Assembly: GCA_016748015.1 (NCBI GenBank)
Contig: JAAOMT010000742.1
Location: 103,543 to 167,542, forward strand
Origin: Geosiphon pyriformis uo1
Lineage: Eukaryota; Fungi; Glomeromycota
Direction: 5' to 3'
DNA: 64,000 nt
The notes below the pieces were generated by a model that was not told the DNA's origin, did no database searches, and saw only the letters and a program-made list of their open reading frames with translations. How positions within the stretch are numbered: position 1 is the first letter of the stretch; every line of letters starts with the position of its first letter. A program made the translations under genes and the position numbers. Shown here piece by piece: positions 38,466 to 52,010 of this stretch.

Positions 38466-39858
38466 ATGCCATCTTTTTCTTTTAAATACACTTCTTTCTT
38501 TGTATCCATCATTATTCTGATCATGATAATTATCATTTCTATTATCTCAATGACAACTCTTAAACCACGAAAATATAAAATGGAGAGTTCAAAGTTGTAT
38601 AGTAAAATTTTGTCGAAAATAAAAGAAAAAAAAGTTGTTAAAAATGAAACCAATTATCAATTGGAGGTTCGTAATTTAGGAGGATTTGGAAAAGGTGGTA
38701 AAAATTCACCAAAAAAAATCTTGGTTGAAGATGTAAAAGAATTGAAATTTTTAAAACGAATGGCTCATTTGGCCAATATTCCTTATTGCTTTGACACAAA
38801 TGAAATTGGGAATGGAAGTGCAGGCTTAATTGGTATGGAATTGAAATTTAAACATTATCTTGGAAAATGGGTCATTTTATCATTAAAATCAAATATATTT
38901 AATAATATTCTAGCTGATGTTGTCAAAGATCATGAGACTCAAAATTTTATTATCTTTTTACGAGGTTTGTCTTCAATAGAAAAAGCAAAAAAAAACTTTT
39001 CTATTATAATTGAAATTAAATGTCTCACTTCATTATATTATTATGAATAGGCCCGGAATACTCAAAAGAGGAATGGGACACAAGAAGATATAAAATGTAT
39101 TCACTTGATGAAAGAGCTAAAATTGAGGGTGGATGGGTACCTATCACAGAAAGTGTTATGAATCGATTGTACAATAAGATTATCACCATGAAAGAACCAA
39201 ATCAAAAAAGTCTAAATTTGGTTTTTATTGGACATGGTGTTGGTGGAGGTATGTTTTATCCAAATAGATAAAAGGATCAAAAATCGTTGAATACTTAAAA
39301 ATTTCATTCTTTGATTTCAAGTTTATGCCGTACAAATGGCCATGCTTTTCTTATCGAAAATAATTGGCCATGAAAATTTACAATTCAGGGAACTTGAAAT
39401 CCAGTTAATCGTGGTTACTTTTGGCCAGCCACGCTTTGCAAATATCGCCTATACAAAATTTATAAACATAGTTCCAAAATTGAAAATATATCGTGTGACG
39501 CATGCCAATGATCATGTTCCTCACAAACCAAAGGTATCCACTTCTGGTGAGAAATACATACATCATGAAACAGAATATTGGATATTGGATAAAAATTGTG
39601 ATTGCATAGATAATGGTTCAGAATTTGAGTTGTATAAATGTCCTGGTTATAAAAAAAATAACCCGGAAAAATTTGGTGAGAATCTGGTGAGTAGCAAAGT
39701 TTGAAGTTTGGATCATATCTCTGGAAAAACATTTTTTGATTCTTTTTTCTCTGCATTAGGGATGTAATTTGTCAACAAATGGATTGGGAGTAGATGCTCA
39801 TTATGGCCCATATTTTGGAACAATATTCGGGAAATGTGAAAGCTTTTACACCGATTAA
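38466..39858 (+). CDS. Class-3 lipase-like protein L5, Ser>Gly (IGHGVGG); type II signal anchor
   Basis: Exons 38466-38832, 38914-38964, 39051-39248, 39322-39686, 39760-39858. Motifs PYC, FLRG, TFGQPR, NDHVP, HHETEYWI..CDC, AHYGPYFG. Confidence 0.88.
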
Positions 39859-40193: not shown

Positions 40194-41680
40194 CTATATG
40201 TCATCAAAATCGTCCTCAAGTGAAGGTGGGCACATTCCCATATTTTGACCAAAATATGGGCCTGAGTGTGATAAATCGATAGAAAAATTGGTAATTTGTG
40301 CTCCAGCATTACAATGCTAATGAAAAAAGATCTGTGAAGTTTATTTAGTAAAATTAAAACAGAGTATAAAAAATAAGTCTTACGGGATTTTCATGGATAT
40401 AGCCATCCACGAGAGGACCAATGCATTCATATACCACAAACATTTGACTCGTGTCAACGCATTCACAATTGTCACTGTATGTTATCCAATATTCTCGGTC
40501 AAAATGCCAATGGCCTTCCAAGTTTTTTCTTTCTGGCAATTGTGGAACCCGGTCATGGGAATGTGTAATACGGTAAATTTTATTGGGAAAAAGAGTCATG
40601 ACAAAGTGTGTAAAAAACAGATTTCCCATGCGTAATTGTCCGAAGGTATAAATTTCAATATCAAGGTAATATTCGGTCATCTTTAGCTCCAAAGCTGTAA
40701 AAACGGCATGTACTATAAAATCTCGAGAAAACATCAGAATTTGATCCATTTTATGAAAAAACAAATGATAGCTAAACATTTTGTACATACCCCCTCCTAC
40801 GCCAAATCCTGCTAAACGGACATGAAATTGAGGCCTCAATAATGAAGAAATCATTTCCATCAAAGTCTTCTTAGCCCTTAAAAAATCTTGATAGAGCTCT
40901 GCGACTACTTGGGCTTGAGGTATATTTGAGTAAGGCCGCCACATATTAAAATTTACTAGCTCTTCCTCATCATAATTGTAATCATATCCTCTCAAATATA
41001 TAATTAATTCTCTGTTTCCCGAGATCTCTGCCCGAGCTAATAATTGAGACAGATAAGAGCTTTGCTTAATTAAATAAAAAAGACGGTTATAACTTTATGT
41101 TGTTTTTACCGTATATTCCTGGTCCAACCATGCCACCTTTGTTTTTTATACAATAGGCCTTATTAGCATAGTAAGCATATTTCCGAAATTTTTGCAACCG
41201 CTTTTGAGGGTCATCTAGTGTTATTTTTCTCTTAAAATGACTTTCTGGATTGGTGGCCAAAATTGGGAATTTCAAATTTCTTTTTGACTTTTTGCGATGA
41301 AATTTCAAGTCTAAACTAGCATTAAAGGTTTGGAAATTTCTAGATAAAGAAGAGAATTCGAATTAAATTTACAAAGCATGTTTGAGGCAATTAAGATGGG
41401 ATTAAAGTATAGAAATGGCGCACATTTTATCTGCTAATTTGGATCTGAATATATCAAAGTGAGAAACCCATTCTATTTTCCTACGAGCTAAAATAGAATG
41501 ATATGTTTTATTTTGATAAGAAATTTCTTGTTGGATTAACTGGCTATTTTCGAAATTCATTGTCGTCTTTGTAGGCCTAAAACGAGAATTTACACCATGA
41601 AAAGCAGTAAAGCTAGAAATAATAAGTAAAATGAGAAAAATAAAATTCATTTGATTATTGAATTCCTCAGTCGTATTCAT
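40194..41680 (-). CDS. Class-3 lipase-like protein L6, His>Phe and Ser>Gly (AGFGVGG); signal peptide
   Basis: Motifs KAYC..GPGIYG, YLRG, GFGVGG, TFGQLRMGN, HDRVP, EYWI..CEC, SHSGPYFG; stop at 40194. The first intron boundaries (~41310-41485) are uncertain. Confidence 0.82.
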
Positions 41681-42209: not shown

Positions 42210-43660
42210 TTACCATGGAGGCCCTTCAGGTGGGCATTCCATCATCATTCCTAAATAAGGGCCATTATGCGCGGCATAATTTTCAGTTTTATATTGGTTA
42301 TTGCACTCCTTTAAAGAAACCGCGAATAAAGATTTTTGATTAAATGGTGCTGTAAAATGCTTATAATGTAAAATAGTCTTTTTAAAAAGTTTACCAAACT
42401 CTCTCCGATAAATTTTTCCGGGCCTAATAGTGGTCCGTTACAAAGAAATAAATTTCCAGTGGCACACAAACAATCATCTAGCTCTATCCAAATTTCATTA
42501 ATCGTGTGAGCATAAAATCTTTGGAAAACATTAGGCGGCAACCTTGGAACATAATCATCCATGTTAGTGACCCGAAAAATTCTAAGAGTGGTATTGGAAA
42601 AAGAATTCACATAATTTGCAAACTGAAGATTGCCAATATGAGGTTGTCCTAAAGTAATAATGCTTAATTTTTGTCCAAATTTCCGTGATATTAAATCCAG
42701 CAATCCAAGTAAAGCATACACTAAAATATTTATATTAGAAATACTTAATATTAAATAAGGAACTTTTATGGATGACTTACTTTTAAAAAAAAATTATTTA
42801 AGCTCACCCCCACCCGAGCCATGTCCAACTCCCGTGATATGTGTTATAACTTTCTTTTCAAGAGCCTTATCAATGCACTTTTGGAAATTAACCTGAATAT
42901 TTTGGAAACGTCTATTGAACTCAATGTCGATTTTGGCACCATCGACCTTAGGATAGGGGACCAGCGCTTTCTGCTTGGCTTCCCAAAATCTCTGATCTCC
43001 TATTGGCTCACCTCTTACAGCAATAATACCTTGGCTTCCTTGCGTAAAAAATTCTGCTAAAGGAAAGCAAAATTGATGTTAGCCCATTAAAAAATTGAAA
43101 AGCTATACCTTTCAATTTCAATAATCCAAAATACCATAAATTCCTGGCCCAATAGCTGTTTCCTCATCGAAACAATAAGAAAGCATGGCAAATCGTATAT
43201 AATATTTTAGAGGATCGGATTGACGTATGAGAGTTTTTCTCCCTTGGGAAGTTCTTTTTGAAAAAAATTTCCTTTTGGTGTCAAAATTCGTATTGAGACT
43301 AGATAAATTAACAGGTAGTGAGATATTTGGTTTTGGAAAAAAAATTATCTGGCTTTTAAAATTTGGGATTGGTAAATATAGTTTTTATTGTATAACAGCA
43401 TTTTTTAGTTGCTTCACAGCGATTGTCGAATTAGTTATATGATCAGTGAAAATTGAAAGGGCATTAGAATGTTGGTTTTTTATTATTTCAACTTCTTTAG
43501 GAATGTATTGGAGCCTCCAGGGCTTTTTCAACAAGATGTAATTTAGTCCCAAAAGAAAAGCGATAAGAAAAACTGAACTTTTTAATTGGTTCTTGATATT
43601 AAATTGAGTATGTCCTTGAAACTGGGTTTTCCGAACCTCTTTTATTGGAAATATTCATTT
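42210..43660 (-). CDS. Class-3 lipase-like protein L7, Ser>Gly (VGHGSGG); 5' end uncertain, possibly pseudogenising
   Basis: Motifs SYC..GPGIYG, VRG, GHGSGG, TLGQPHIGN, DDYVPRLP, EIWI..CLC, AHNGPYLG; stop at 42210. There is an in-frame TAA at 43385-43387 in the pro-region and no clear in-frame ATG. Confidence 0.72.
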
Positions 43661-44390
43661 CTAAATGGCTATTAGTCTCATTGTCACCCGTAGAAACTCT
43701 CTTATTTTTTAAAATTCAAATTTAAATCAAATAGTTCAGTTCCTTTATCTAGCCTGTTTATTAATTTAGTTTGCAAAATACCCTTTATATCTTTATGTAG
43801 CAATCAAAAGAAAATTTTTAACAAGTAATGTATTTCAAAAATTTTTACTAATATTGAACTATGAATCATCTATTTCATTAGATTTGCAGAATTATTAGAG
43901 TGAAATATCATTGTAAAAATTTTTAAGAAAATTTCAACTATTTGCTTTTATTTATAAATAATGCTATTCTTACAATATAGGTTTTTCCAAATCAAGCTTG
44001 TTTCCTAAATATTATTTTTGTTTAATAGCAGTGTCTAAGATGTATGATAAGACCAATAAATTTTCACAATGCATCACTGTATTTATGTTTTCTCAAGTCT
44101 TTTGTAAAAATGAAATTCAAAGCTTTGATCTAATACCTTTAAGAATTTAATTTAATTACGCCGGATGTTATTCAAAATCTAAACGGCTTTCATGATGAAT
44201 AAATTATGTAACTATAAATGAGGAAACAATAATAGGGAATGGGTACTGCGTAATGATCGACAGTTTTTTCTTCACTAGTAATTTTCCTATCGAACGACCT
44301 CAACAATGAAAAAGAATCTAATCCATCAAAATAAACTCGCCTGGAGTTTTTAAAGATAATTCTTGAAGTATTAATTTATTAATTTTCTAA

Positions 44391-46787
44391 TCAATTTCGA
44401 GGAAAGACGAGAATATTGTAACATTTGGTCCTCCAGGATGGTGTGATAAATTCGATGATTTCGAGATTTTGATCAGGAATACTCTGTAGTTTATAGCGAT
44501 GCAAGATTGTTGCTAGGAAAAGACGAATTTCTTGAAGAGCAAGGCTAAAAAATATTTTTACTATAATCAACTTTGCTTCAATGAGTCATAAATTTTGCAT
44601 TAAAGGAAATAAAAATAGTTATTACCTGTTGTCAATGGAACTGATGGTCCCTTTAAAAATGAAAAAATTAATGGTGACCGCACAAAAATGTAACGCATTT
44701 TAATTATACTTTAAGATTAATTTAATTTGATACCTACCAGCTCCACATGGATAAAAGGCATCTCGAGGAACAGGATTTGTTGGATTCATCCATCGCTCAG
44801 GTACAAATTCTTCAGCATCCTGGCCCCAATATTGGGTGGAACGATGAATACTGTGAACTTGGGCCACCACTTCCATCTGTTTGGCCAATATAAAATTAAA
44901 ACTATCTTTAATTAAAAAAAAAAAATAAGAATTTGAAACCAATTACCCCTTTTGGTATGAGATGTCCACCCAGAACAATATCATCTTTTGCTTTTGTCTT
45001 GAAAACTTCAGCTAAAGAGTAAATAATAAATTTTCTTAACTTTACTATTTTTTACTTATTTAGAATATCACAATATATTTTTTACTTAGGGGGGAAGGCC
45101 ATAGCCTCATTGATTCTTTAATAACCGCATTCAAATATCGTAAATTTTTAAGATTATCATGTCTTGGCAATTCATCGTTATAGGCGGAAGACAAAGAAGT
45201 ATCGATTTCGAGATAAAGTTTTCTCAATTTTTTGGGATGTTGAACGAGTAAAATTAAGGTCATCAAAACGTTGAAAGCAATCAAGTCACTTTCTGAAATC
45301 CTAAGAATGAATTCATAAGGATGAGAAAAACGTATAGCATAATGGTTTTAGAGAAAATATTTTTAACTTACAAAAATTCCATCAATTGTTCTTTAATCTT
45401 ATCATCCGTTAGGCCATGTTTAACTTGGCTGGATACGTCAAGTAACATTTGTAGAAGGTCATTTTTTGGAGCAGAAATGCTTTGTCGACGGTTTTTTATC
45501 AAGCGAAAAAAGAACTTTGAAATAAAAAATTAGTTTTTAATTAATAAACAAGTATTATTAATAATATTTATCAATGCGTATAAGTAAAATATTTCAAGTA
45601 CGTTGCTAAAATATGGGTCCTCATTCCAGACCAACTTTAAGAATGGAAATTGAGAAATCTTTTGAAAATTCAAGATTAGTTAAATCACGTTAGGATAATG
45701 AAGCTAAAAAGTATTTTAATGAAATGATACTCACAAAGAATTTTCTTTTCAAAGCCTCTCTTACTTTCTTGAAGAATGGATGTGCTTCTATTTGAATCAA
45801 ATCAAAACTGATACTAAAAGCAGCTTCACCAACTATCTCCTAAATTGCAAAAAAAAAATATGTTTAATGTATCAAATATCCCGTTTTCAAATTAAGCTTA
45901 ATATTTTTATTCTTAAATAATATTACCAATGTGCATCTTTGAATAAGGTCAGAAAAGTTTATAATCAAACCCTTTTTTAAGTCCCCGCCCTTTAATTCTT
46001 GGTCAATTTTTTGAATAATTTGACCCATAGACTTTTGCATCAATGGTTCAAGACTTGATAAATTTTTGATTAAAGGGGTGTATAAAAGAAAATATCTCTA
46101 AAAAGGATGGAATAAAAAATTAGTAGCACATAAGGATATCCATCAAACACGTACTTTTAAGAAGATTACATTTATTGTGAAAATCTATTCAGAAGATATA
46201 ATAAAAAACGTTATATATTAAAATAATATTTTTAAAATATCAAAATTTATTCGTTATTAACCTGTTTAATGGCATCTCGATCGGCTATCATGACCTTTTG
46301 AAAACCTAGATACGAAAGAAGCATAGACTGAAAATCACATTTATAAACGCCTTATAATTAAAAATTTTATTTGAAATGTATTAACTTACTTGTTCGCACT
46401 ATAGATCCATATTTCGGAAATAAATTGAACTGCCAATAGCTCCAGCTATTTTGACAAAGGCAAAACTATTGAGTTAATGTACAAGGATTTTTCAATCTGT
46501 TAATAGTTCGATACCAACCTTATTCCTCGAACTGCAATGTATAACATGTATAATCCATGGAAACTAAACAAACTAGGCCCAGGTATTTTGCGTTTATCAC
46601 CAATACGTAGTTTCTGTTTTTCAAAAAGAGGTGTAAACATAATGTGACGCGCCAACATAATCCCAATATTGGATGAAATTCATTTTACATTGTAAATTAG
46701 ACTTGAAAAAATAAAGGCAGCAAAACCAGTCAAAAATTTGAACACTATCTCTCTGCCAATAGGTAGGAACTCTATAAATGTCTCCAT
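44391..46787 (-). CDS. Cytochrome P450-fold protein lacking the heme-thiolate cysteine (14 exons, open frame)
   Basis: N-terminal anchor, IPGP, KYGSIVR, LEPLM, EIVGEAAF, DLLQMLL, YLNAVIKESMRL (ExxR), LGGHLIPKG, FVPERW. The heme motif splices as PCGAGTISSIDNSLALQEIR via micro-exon 44626-44650. The I-helix reads FLISESDLIA. Confidence 0.85.
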
Positions 46788-47707: not shown

Positions 47708-48947
47708 TTAGAGAACTGGAAATGTTGTGCCAAAATATGGGCCAAAGTGAGCTGTAGTGCTTGATCCATCTGTTGACAAGCTACATTCCTTTGGAAATGA
47801 AACAAACCCATTCATAAGTAAAAGATAATAAATTTTGGATAAATTAAAAGTTGAGAACGTACCGGATTTTCACCATATCGAAGCGAAGCTTTAATATTAT
47901 ATCCAGGGCATTTATAGATTTTTGGCTCACCATTAATTTCTGCACAATCACAATCATCTGATATCCAATACTCTAATTCATGATGCATATATTCAGGTTC
48001 AATTGGATGTATCTTTGGTTGATGAGGAAAATGGTCATTTTTGTTGGTTACACGATATAATGTGAGCAGGCTATTAACATATTTGGCAAAGTATGCGTTT
48101 CCAATTCTCGGTTCCCCAAAAGTTACCACAATCCATTCTATACTTATATTAGGATCACCGCGAAAAACTTCCGAGAAAGTTTCTTTCAACTGGACAGCAG
48201 CAAGCAAAGCGTAAACTTTTTAAGATAAAAAATTTAGGTTTGATATGACAAACTTTTATATATAACCAAAAAATACCAATAATTATACCTCCTCCAAGTC
48301 CATGTCCGGTAAAATAAATCTTGAGTCCAACAAATGCATTTGTATTTTTAAGGAAATCAATTATAAATCTTTGAGCCTTTAACGCAATGTCAACGGAATT
48401 TCGCAGCCATTCACCGTCAACTAAGGCCTTCCCAATTTTCTTGTATTTTTGTAAAGAAGGTATTCTTGAAGCCCATTCTTGTGGTCCCATCCTTTTTCTA
48501 CTTCCCACAAAAATTATGAATTCTTTATATAGAGCAAGTTCTTCAAAGTCAGCTATTAAAGAAAAATTTTAAAAATCAGTCTTCCTTGACTATCTTACTA
48601 AGTATTTGATTGCTTCTGTTTATCAACTCACCTACTACATCGGGCACTTCTAAACCCAGCCGATTTCCTCTGGGAGAAAGATATGGTTTCTCAGCGAATT
48701 TGGCCATTCGAGCCAAGAGACTTAAAGTCGCTGGATTTGTGATAATTGATTTTGGTTGAGAGTTTTTAGGTTTTTTACCAAACCCTTCCGCAACTATTTC
48801 TACTGATTTCAATATCTTTGGGAAAAGGGAATAAGGTCTTTTTAAATCTGTAAAGCCAACAATTTCCCCTTTCAAAATTGGAGTTTCTCCATGAGCTATT
48901 CGAAAAAAAACACTCAAAGAGAGAAATAAGAGAATCAAGTTCATCAT
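47708..48947 (-). CDS. Class-3 lipase-like protein L8, Ser>Gly (TGHGLGG); signal peptide
   Basis: MMNLILLFLSLSVFFRIAHG; 4 exons; motifs GHGLGG, TFGEPRIGN, NDHFP, HHELEYWI..CDC, AHFGPYFG; stop at 47708. Confidence 0.88.
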
Positions 48948-49818: not shown

Positions 49819-52010
49819 ATGTTTTCTAAAGTATTTAAAATAAAAAACGATAAATTTTACTCTTTCATAGTTTTAGCATTATTTCGATCTCTTACTTTTG
49901 ATATTATACTATTTAATTCATGTTTAACTTTACCAACGCTTTCCTCATATTCTCCACCAGGGCGATATGGACATACAGCAGTACTAGTCAATCAAAAAAT
50001 TTATTTTCTGGGTGGAATAGATTCTACTTCCGATCATATTTTTGACGATTTCTTTAGCTTAGATTTGTCCAAACGTTTTAATACAAATTCAAATTCGTTT
50101 GAATTGATACATAATAAAAAATCAATTCCAAAGGTAGCACGAGCAAGTGCCTTTGTGGTTCATGATACAAAAATTCTGGTTTGCGGTGGTATTGAGGTAA
50201 GGAAAAATAGTTATTTGAATTTGATTTATCTCGAAAATCTTTTTGGCTATAATGTTAAAAGTATTTAACAGAAAGTGAGCGACATCAAAACCAACGGTAC
50301 TGAGACCATACGTGCGAGTCGTTCAATATACTCAATCGACCTGAAATCTACAGATTCATGGACGAAAAAAGGTTTTAATTCTGAACTAGAATTTGCAACG
50401 AGAAATAAAACATTTCCATTTACTATTGACCAATCGGGCAAGATTTATGCATTCATCAGCTCAAGAGTGATCAATGATTCTTCGTATACTTATTATCAAA
50501 ATTTGAATGAAACCAATTTGAATTTGATCGAAAATTCTTCAATTTCAATTTTAAACAATAAAACTTCACGTTTTGTAAATGAATCGGCGGTCTATGTATT
50601 TGATACAGTCACCAACAGTTGGTCGATGAGACAACCAAAAGTTAAGGGAAATAGTGAGACCCCATTGCCAGGATATGAGTTTACGGCTACCTTTTTAGAT
50701 GATGGGCGGATTGTATATATTGGTGGAAAAAGTAATAATGGGAATTATGCGGATATGAGTAAAGTAAGTCTTTGCGGAAAGGTTATTGCTTGACTTGAAT
50801 TTAGACTAAAGACTTTCGATAAACTTATAGATTTGGACATATGACACGAAGAAAGACGAGTGGAATATAAATGTAAGTTAAAATTTAGATAGTTATCAAG
50901 ATTCTTAAATGATGCAAAATTTTTAGTTGACTTATTCTTCTTTTCGCTGACAGTCTGTGAATCCGAAAGGTGACACTATTACTCCAAGGAAACTTCATTC
51001 AGCCATCTTAGGCAAGTAGTTAGCAAAGAAGGAGATTGAGAATTGTCTTTTATTATGGGATTTTAAACTAATTTTTTATTGAAATATGAAACTTTTTTTT
51101 TTTTATAAAAGTCAATAATAGCAAGATAATTATATATGGTGGTTTCTCAGATCTATCGATTACAGGTGCAAATGCACTTGCCATTTTAGATACGCGAAAT
51201 TGGATTTGGAAAATACCAAAAAATGACAATCAGAACAGTATTCCATTCTCACATTCTGCCATCTTTTACCGTGATTATATGATTGTAGCTTTTGGTAAGT
51301 TTGGATACGCAGCGAAAGTTTTGGCATATTTACTTTCCTGCTGATTCAAATATAAATCCCTTTAATTATTTGTAGGTTATGTGCCACTAGGAAACAATAT
51401 AACCACAGGCAAACCAATCGAAAAGAATTACCTTAGCATTCTGGACACATCTAACAATTCTTTCAACTGGTTAACAGCATATATTCCAAGAGATAAACTC
51501 ACCCCTGGCACAAGCTCTAAAACAGAAAACAATTCAATCCCTGACCACTTAAACATAGATGCTTCTACCTCAAAATCATCGATCGGAAAAATAGTCGGAC
51601 TCTTAATTGGTTTAAGCGTATTTATCTTTGGTGGTCTGTTATTCTGGTTTTGTTGGCGACGAATAAAGAAAAATGATATAAGAAGACAAAGAAATACTCC
51701 TGTCTTTTTATCACCACCTGAAAAATCATTGGTTGTTCCAGCTTTATCAGCAAGTATGCTAAATCGAAACTCAACTTCTCCAAAGCCAAGTATACAAACC
51801 CTTGATTCAATTGAAAGCGATTTATCAACAACAACGTCTAGTTTGAATACTCCAGAATTCCCAAATTTGGATTCATATATTGTACGTGGTAATCGGGGTG
51901 TTTCTTTGTCGGGACAGTTACCACCACCACGACCAAAATTTCTATCAGTCCCGCCAATGAGAGTCACCAGTTCGGGACATATTTCAGCTTCAGTTGTTCA
52001 TGCTTTGTAA
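49819..52010 (+). CDS. Kelch / galactose-oxidase-like beta-propeller single-pass membrane protein
   Basis: Kelch repeats GRYGHTAVLVNQKIYFLGG, EFTATFLDDGRIVYIGG, RKLHSAILVNNSKIIIYGG, FSHSAILYRDYMIVAFG. TM helix IVGLLIGLSVFIFGGLLFWFCW followed by RR, then a Pro/Ser-rich tail. 6 exons. Confidence 0.87.

Follow-up and report, generated by a model that had tools for sequence, protein, structure and literature searches.

Can a eukaryotic cytochrome P450 gene lose the cysteine that serves as axial ligand of the heme iron and still be maintained, or is such a sequence a gene in decay? The question is raised by a P450-like gene on the minus strand, at positions 44391-46787, of a 64,000-nucleotide (nt) stretch of the genome of Geosiphon pyriformis (Glomeromycotina). 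This stretch, referred to below as the window, corresponds to positions 103543-167542 of contig C376 (JAAOMT010000742.1) in a 128-Mb assembly with a GC content of about 30%. With somewhat better than even confidence, we regard the gene as encoding a P450-fold protein that has been retained while thiolate-heme monooxygenation was given up, rather than as a case of ordinary decay.

Loss of the heme-thiolate motifs

A spliced protein-to-genome aligner was written for the purpose and run on both the window and the paralogous loci, and the gene model was rebuilt independently. The gene consists of 14 exons and 13 introns of 57-87 nt, all 13 being of the GT-AG type with the 26 splice dinucleotides intact, and its coding sequence of 1398 nt encodes 465 amino acid residues with 0 stops, in agreement with the stop-free P450 fold described in the original prediction. 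The protein matches PF00067, for which the cut-off is passed by exon 10 alone (39.1 bits) and by exon 12 alone (24.3 bits). Over its whole length it can be aligned with 14 homologues, which come from Gigaspora, Entrophospora, Ambispora, Diversispora, Acaulospora and other Mucoromycota, indicating its membership in the P450 fold.

The Cys pocket, which follows the pattern FxxGxRxCxG in P450s, reads P-C-G-A-G-T-I-S-S-I-D in this protein, as had been noted before. The first part, P-C-G-A-G, forms the last residues of exon 12 (44738-44876, 139 nt), while the core, T-I-S-S-I-D-N, is encoded by exon 13, a micro-exon of 25 nt (44626-44650). Ser411, encoded by TCC at 44637-44639, aligns with the axial Cys of all the homologues, and the Phe at position −7 is replaced by Cys (Cys404). 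The pocket Arg, Cys and Gly are present in 14 of the 14 homologues and in all three intact paralogues within the same genome (C584, C418 and one other), except that one sequence carries Ala for the final Gly.

The I-helix shows a similar loss. Within exon 10 (45086-45300, 215 nt), which spans the region from the I-helix to the ExxR of the K-helix, the sequence I-S-E-S-D-L is found, as first reported; its SESDL lies at 45282-45296, where the sister paralogues and the family have AGSDT. Except for P0013, an annotated model that is gapped at AG, the aligned homologues carry AGSDT or AGSET (13 of 14). The acid-alcohol pair of (A/G)Gx(D/E)T is thus absent from the window protein. At these motif positions the codons differ from those of the sisters by 1-3 bases each (TGT to TCC, AGA to ATC and ACA to TTG).

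The helix-C contacts of the W/F-x3-R type are also absent because the exon that encodes them is missing, and the next Arg is replaced by Tyr. In the relatives, the aromatic-x3-Arg of this missing exon falls at W96 of P450 BM3 and at the CYP3A W/R pair, residues that bind the heme propionates. Judging from the structures of CYP3A4 and BM3, the losses in the window gene presumably remove most or all of the propionate anchors. One further claim of the original prediction, that replacement of the beta1-4 Arg by Lys is a distinctive loss, carries no weight: the position is Lys in the window protein, or else the alignment is ambiguous there, and Lys is also found in 3 of the 14 homologues.

Several structural elements are kept, again as originally described. 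These include ExxR (KESMRL, E329-x-x-R332), the PERW motif, the PGP hinge and the hydrophobic N-terminus that forms the membrane anchor.

Exon structure shared with the sister paralogues

Four related loci were identified in the genome, and the window gene itself is single-copy at the DNA level. On sequence comparison, the gene is a Geosiphon-lineage paralogue within a microsomal P450 family of Glomeromycotina and Mucoromycota, of which the nearest solved relatives are CYP3A and CYP102 (BM3), and its closest relatives are C584 and C418. In the maximum-likelihood tree the window gene is the sister of C584 plus C418, with support of 91/87. Both paralogues are intact and canonical, with AGSDT and xRMCxG.

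The exon sizes of C584 and C418, counted from the exon that corresponds to exon 3 of the window gene, are 56, 44, 15, 68/65, 25, 171, 108/105, 57, 125, 215, 59, 136, 25 and 151 nt. Those of the window gene are 56, 44, 15 or 30, none, none, 171, 105, 57, 143, 215, 65, 139, 25 and 154 nt. The exons of 56, 44, 15, 171, 57, 215 and 25 nt are therefore identical in size among the three genes, and that of 105 nt is common to the window gene and C418 (108 nt in C584). The remaining differences in length from the sisters (9, 93, 18, 6, 3 and 3 nt) are all multiples of 3. Since the 25-nt micro-exon agrees in size, phase and position with that of C584 and C418, where it encodes xRMCxG, the micro-exon for the Cys pocket is best taken as an ancestral feature of the clade, homologous and not fortuitous.

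The same comparison explains the gap of about 30 residues in the B'/B-C region that had been noticed at the outset. The absence is real, but it is not a shortened loop: what is missing corresponds exactly to two ancestral exons (68/65 plus 25 nt; 93 nt or 31 codons), which cover the B' helix, the loop from B' to C and the beginning of helix C with its F/W-x3-R. Their place is occupied in the window gene by intron 5 (46098-46154). At this site the sisters have about 350-410 nt including the two exons, while the window gene is reduced to 57-72 nt, in which no coding remnant is left, pointing to a genomic deletion of about 300-350 bp that left one short chimeric intron. Downstream of this intron, exon 6 (45927-46097, 171 nt) begins with RYFLL in place of the family RRLLSPAFS, and LEPLM is kept.

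Read-through of intron 5 was considered and rejected. The intron (57 nt, in frame, with two stops) could be taken as a degenerate coding remnant, but the sisters have an intron that ends at the identical acceptor, the apparent 'FH' match falls within the polypyrimidine tract, and two separate exons of the sisters are absent here.

Upstream of intron 5, exon 5 was first read as 30 nt (46155-46184). It stands as an in-frame exon; its extent is less certain. Its first 15 nt (46170-46184) are the counterpart of the 15-nt micro-exon in the sisters, after which comes a GTAATC donor (46169). Both the 15-nt and the 30-nt versions are in frame, and exon 5 may be the ancestral 15-nt micro-exon ending at this donor rather than the 30-nt version.

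The fourth paralogue, C348 (255000-260500), illustrates how decay proceeds in this family. Its exons are scrambled, and its reading frame is interrupted by a stop and shifted in a T-run immediately ahead of PERW, but it still reads AGSDTT and RKCLG, a pattern opposite to that of the window gene.

The paralogue C401 has hardly any introns, 2 compared with 14-15 in the related genes, which suggests intron loss in its lineage, possibly by retro-copying. One of its introns holds a long microsatellite of the CTAC/CTACCTAC type (positions 1500-1700 of the fetched stretch).

Constraint outside the motifs and its loss inside

Against the paralogues, the synonymous divergence (dS) of the window gene is higher than 1.8 or not computable. 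The synonymous sites are thus saturated, indicating that the split from the paralogues is old, and the ratio of nonsynonymous (dN) to synonymous divergence is uninformative. Relative-rate counts with four outgroups were used instead, in which three motif windows, the helix-C junction, the I-helix and the Cys pocket, were treated separately from the rest of the protein. Outside these motif windows, the unique replacements in the window gene versus a sister numbered 53 v 52, 43 v 51, 48 v 48, 47 v 41, 55 v 43 and 45 v 44, none of the differences being significant. Inside the motif windows the count was 19 v 3 (Fisher p=0.002).

The same pattern was observed for conserved columns, defined by the non-Geosiphon homologues only. 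The window gene keeps 48 of the 59 conserved columns outside the motif windows (51-53 in the paralogues) and 10 of the 33 inside (25-29 in the paralogues). The dN within the motif windows of the window gene equals its gene-wide value (0.54-0.62); between canonical copies it is 0.28-0.34, or about half their gene-wide value. With the outside rates equal, the replacements concentrated in the motif windows and the exon-length differences all in multiples of 3, the proposal of the original prediction that the loss was targeted, with frame and fold maintained, is upheld against random decay. The marks of a pseudogene are missing: among the 465 codons there are 0 stops, frameshifts or broken splice sites, and no gene-wide acceleration is seen outside the motif windows. 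The retained features appear to be under purifying selection.

How long could the gene have evolved neutrally and still look as it does? An AT-biased, substitution-only neutral simulation was performed on the window coding sequence and its 26 splice dinucleotides. With 0.02 substitutions per site, 5% of the runs kept all of them intact, and with 0.08 none did (0/2000), so that any neutral evolution is limited to less than about 0.02-0.03 substitutions per site. Because an intact reading frame with intact splice sites is so short-lived in the simulation, the change in the motifs cannot have built up during neutrality of the gene as a whole. If the gene did die recently, constraint on the heme-thiolate apparatus had been relaxed long before, the rest having stayed constrained.

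The alternative that survives best is a young unitary pseudogene, that is, a gene maintained until recently, in canonical or already Cys-less form, and now dead but not yet hit by a stop, a frameshift or a splice mutation. We consider it unlikely, but several observations speak for it and weigh against a retained protein. The branch of the window gene in the tree is about 25% longer than those of its sisters (1.28 vs about 1.0), and somewhat more conserved columns are altered outside the motif windows (11 vs 6-8 in the paralogues), although this difference is not significant. The motif windows were chosen from prior knowledge of P450s and from the claims of the original prediction, and not blindly. 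Constraint is deduced here from old paralogues only, and a death younger than about 0.02 substitutions per site would be compatible with the data. The gene is a singleton of a single genome: no orthologue with the same lesions was found among about 15 billion proteins, and the collection gave no transcript-derived protein fragments when queried with the C-terminal part of the public model. The family does yield pseudogenes, as the C348 copy shows.

In an exhaustive HMMER search with exon 10, the only sequence above 56% identity was the gene's own public model. SESDL occurred in none of the retrieved short fragments, whose I-helices are all of the AG type (such as AGSDT, AGTDT or GGSDT), and word-indexed protein searches added nothing, the results being swamped by generic P450s.

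What decides against the young pseudogene is time. An interval of less than about 0.02-0.03 substitutions per site is far too short for the approximately 16 extra replacements and the multi-base codon changes, which are restricted to three motif windows, and all the insertions and deletions are in frame. Even if the gene died recently, the Cys-less state must have been kept for most of the history of the lineage.

Possible function without thiolate heme

On this reading, the history of the gene may be outlined as follows. The Phe, Arg, Cys and Gly of the Cys pocket, the AG..T of the I-helix and two exons, with the B' helix, the N-terminus of helix C and the propionate contacts, were lost long ago. 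The membrane anchor, the core from ExxR through the meander to PERW, the L-helix, the splice sites and the reading frame have been kept. The product would then work as a P450-fold protein anchored in the endoplasmic reticulum, without thiolate-heme monooxygenation and probably without heme. It could bind, or be a scaffold for, a hydrophobic ligand or a partner protein, as EryCII and DesVIII do for glycosyltransferases. The comparisons show the anatomy of the sequence, the homology of its exons and a rate of evolution outside the motifs equal to that of the sisters, while expression, heme loss and the binding role of the window protein are what we infer for it. The heme-free state is the likelier one, judging from the alignments, because the protein has lost the Arg, Cys and Gly of the pocket, the anchors on helix C, the roof formed by B', the helix-C basic patch for reductase docking and the Gly of the I-helix, which is now Glu.

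Bacteria are where natural P450 homologues lacking the axial Cys have been described to date, as heme-free activators of glycosyltransferases and as non-canonical CYPs (ncCYPs). The former, the actinobacterial PDGAF or EryCII-DesVIII proteins, have the P450 fold but have lost the axial Cys, bind no heme and act as scaffold or chaperone (PMC3391682; PMC11703216). EryCII is without the Cys as well as helices C and C', and retains helices I to L, and heme-free homologues activate glycosyltransferases (PMC3391682). The window gene resembles them in having lost the Cys and the start of helix C, with the K-helix, meander and L-helix conserved. It differs in being of independent origin: it does not belong to this group by sequence but is nested among canonical fungal P450s, and it is a eukaryotic gene with 13 introns and a membrane-anchored product. 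Instead of a glycosyltransferase gene, its neighbors are Lipase_3 and Kelch genes.

The ncCYPs were described in a 2024 preprint, in which 880 bacterial members from six phyla are reported and the structure of a native Ser-ligated member, P450-G9, was solved (PDB 9CJG); eukaryotes are not mentioned there (PMC11703216). Both P450-G9 and the window protein are natural P450 homologues with Ser at the aligned axial position. P450-G9, however, binds heme, while heme binding is doubtful for the window protein, which has also lost the Arg and Gly of the pocket, the contacts on helix C and the B' region. The engineered P411 (P450 BM3 C400S) likewise shares with the window gene the replacement of the axial Cys by Ser in a CYP102/CYP3-like scaffold, but P411 is a laboratory product that keeps every other heme contact, whereas the window gene is natural and carries multiple lesions.

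In fungal surveys, sequences showing one but not both of the signature motifs EXXR and CXG have routinely been labelled pseudo-P450s and left unannotated (PMC4633277). The window gene would be filed among them. Unlike an incomplete or decayed model, however, it offers positive evidence of constraint outside the motifs. The locus would represent an independently evolved eukaryotic case, and the comparative evidence argues that its Cys-less state has been maintained by selection. If the gene is expressed, the biology of P450 pseudo-enzymes or of alternative-ligand P450s would extend to eukaryotes, and the gene would provide a natural test of P450 scaffold function without thiolate heme.

Alternatives with bound heme and possible artefacts

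A functional but non-canonical heme protein, in which the alkoxide of Ser411 or the new Cys seven residues upstream serves as the ligand for an altered, non-monooxygenase chemistry, is rather improbable. The fold is conserved, Ser stands exactly at the aligned axial position with the Phe to Cys change at −7, and a native Ser-ligated CYP is known in bacteria (PMC11703216). Several other features that hold the heme, however, are gone as well: besides the pocket Arg and Gly, the equivalents of the helix-C Trp/Phe and Arg, as mapped on BM3 and CYP3A, are missing together with the whole B' roof and the helix-C basic patch for reductase docking, and the Gly of the I-helix is now Glu.

It is still more doubtful that the gene encodes a membrane-anchored non-canonical CYP with heme still bound, the first of its kind in eukaryotes, the ligand being Ser411 or Cys404, with the I-helix Glu over the iron and the distal side opened by deletion of B', and that carries out a non-monooxygenase chemistry such as a peroxide- or lipid-hydroperoxide-dependent reaction. 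Such a heme-binding variant may be connected with the array of lipase genes around it.

An alternative splice form that supplies RxCxG was sought and none was found, neither RxCxG nor CxG being encoded in any minus-strand frame of 44391-44900. A second in-frame donor (GTATAA) is present 28 nt downstream of the exon-12 donor, and the added segment (44709-44737, minus strand) can be joined directly to exon 14. This form, which was chosen by the spliced aligner with 2 of 3 guide proteins, carries nine unrelated residues in place of the micro-exon and is also without Cys. Skipping of exon 13 would lead to a frameshift of the conserved exon 14.

That the assembly or the gene model is wrong, with RxCxG and the missing exons present in the actual transcript or locus, is highly improbable: the public model of the gene (P0001) does differ from ours and is chimeric, but its departures match the micro-exon failures of the annotator in the sister genes (models P0018 and P0010), the locus is single-copy in the assembly, its 3' region encodes no Cys-pocket motif in any frame, the exon boundaries coincide with those of both sisters, and five residue changes in one micro-exon plus the changes in the I-helix are beyond base-calling error, which removes sequencing error at 44626-44650 as the explanation.

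Other exons of the gene

The GC content of the gene is 36% in exons and 22% in introns. Exon 1 (46689-46787) contains the start codon, the first ATG past an upstream in-frame stop, and encodes the N-terminal hydrophobic membrane anchor. The KIPGP hinge is encoded by exon 2 (46519-46613), whose counterpart in the sisters measures 104 nt, giving the difference of 9 nt. Exon 3 (46390-46445, 56 nt) encodes KYGSIVR and exon 4 (46262-46305, 44 nt) IADRDAIKQ; for the latter, the public model takes a longer, non-homologous acceptor. Exon 7 (45735-45839, 105 nt) and exon 8 (45602-45658, 57 nt) are followed by exon 9 (45372-45514), which is 143 nt in the window gene and 125 nt in the sisters. Exon 11 (44947-45011), of 65 nt (59 nt in the sisters), covers the beta1-4 region with EVFKTKAKDD, and exon 12 encodes the PERW meander upstream of the Cys pocket. 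The L-helix and the C-terminal beta sheet are encoded by exon 14 (44391-44544), which can be aligned in frame with the family right up to its end and terminates with TGA.

Annotation and neighboring genes

The public protein over the locus is G9A89_001436 (P0001, 768 aa), a chimera covering 42311-46787 of the window (minus strand), in which P450 exons 1-12 are joined directly to a downstream class-3 lipase gene. It includes a long, non-homologous exon 4 and omits exon 5, the Cys-pocket micro-exon and the last exon. In P0018, the model of C418, both introns around the 25-nt micro-exon are retained and the N-terminus is missing, while P0010, the model of C401, is fused to a downstream multi-pass membrane protein. 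The automated annotation was thus wrong in all three models inspected. P450 counts taken from the Geosiphon annotation are unreliable, and P450 censuses of Glomeromycotina may be distorted.

The P450-like gene lies within a tandem array of four Lipase_3 (PF01764) genes, located at 38466-39704 (plus strand) and at 40354-41680, 42311-43400 and 47812-48947 (all minus strand). The array is followed by a Kelch-repeat gene at 49819-50793. The adjacency of P450 and lipase genes as a conserved module was considered and rejected, as the sister paralogues have no lipase neighbors in the flanks fetched. Elsewhere in the window, the segment 14001-18000 is very rich in AT, with a GC content of 15-18% compared with about 30% for the window.

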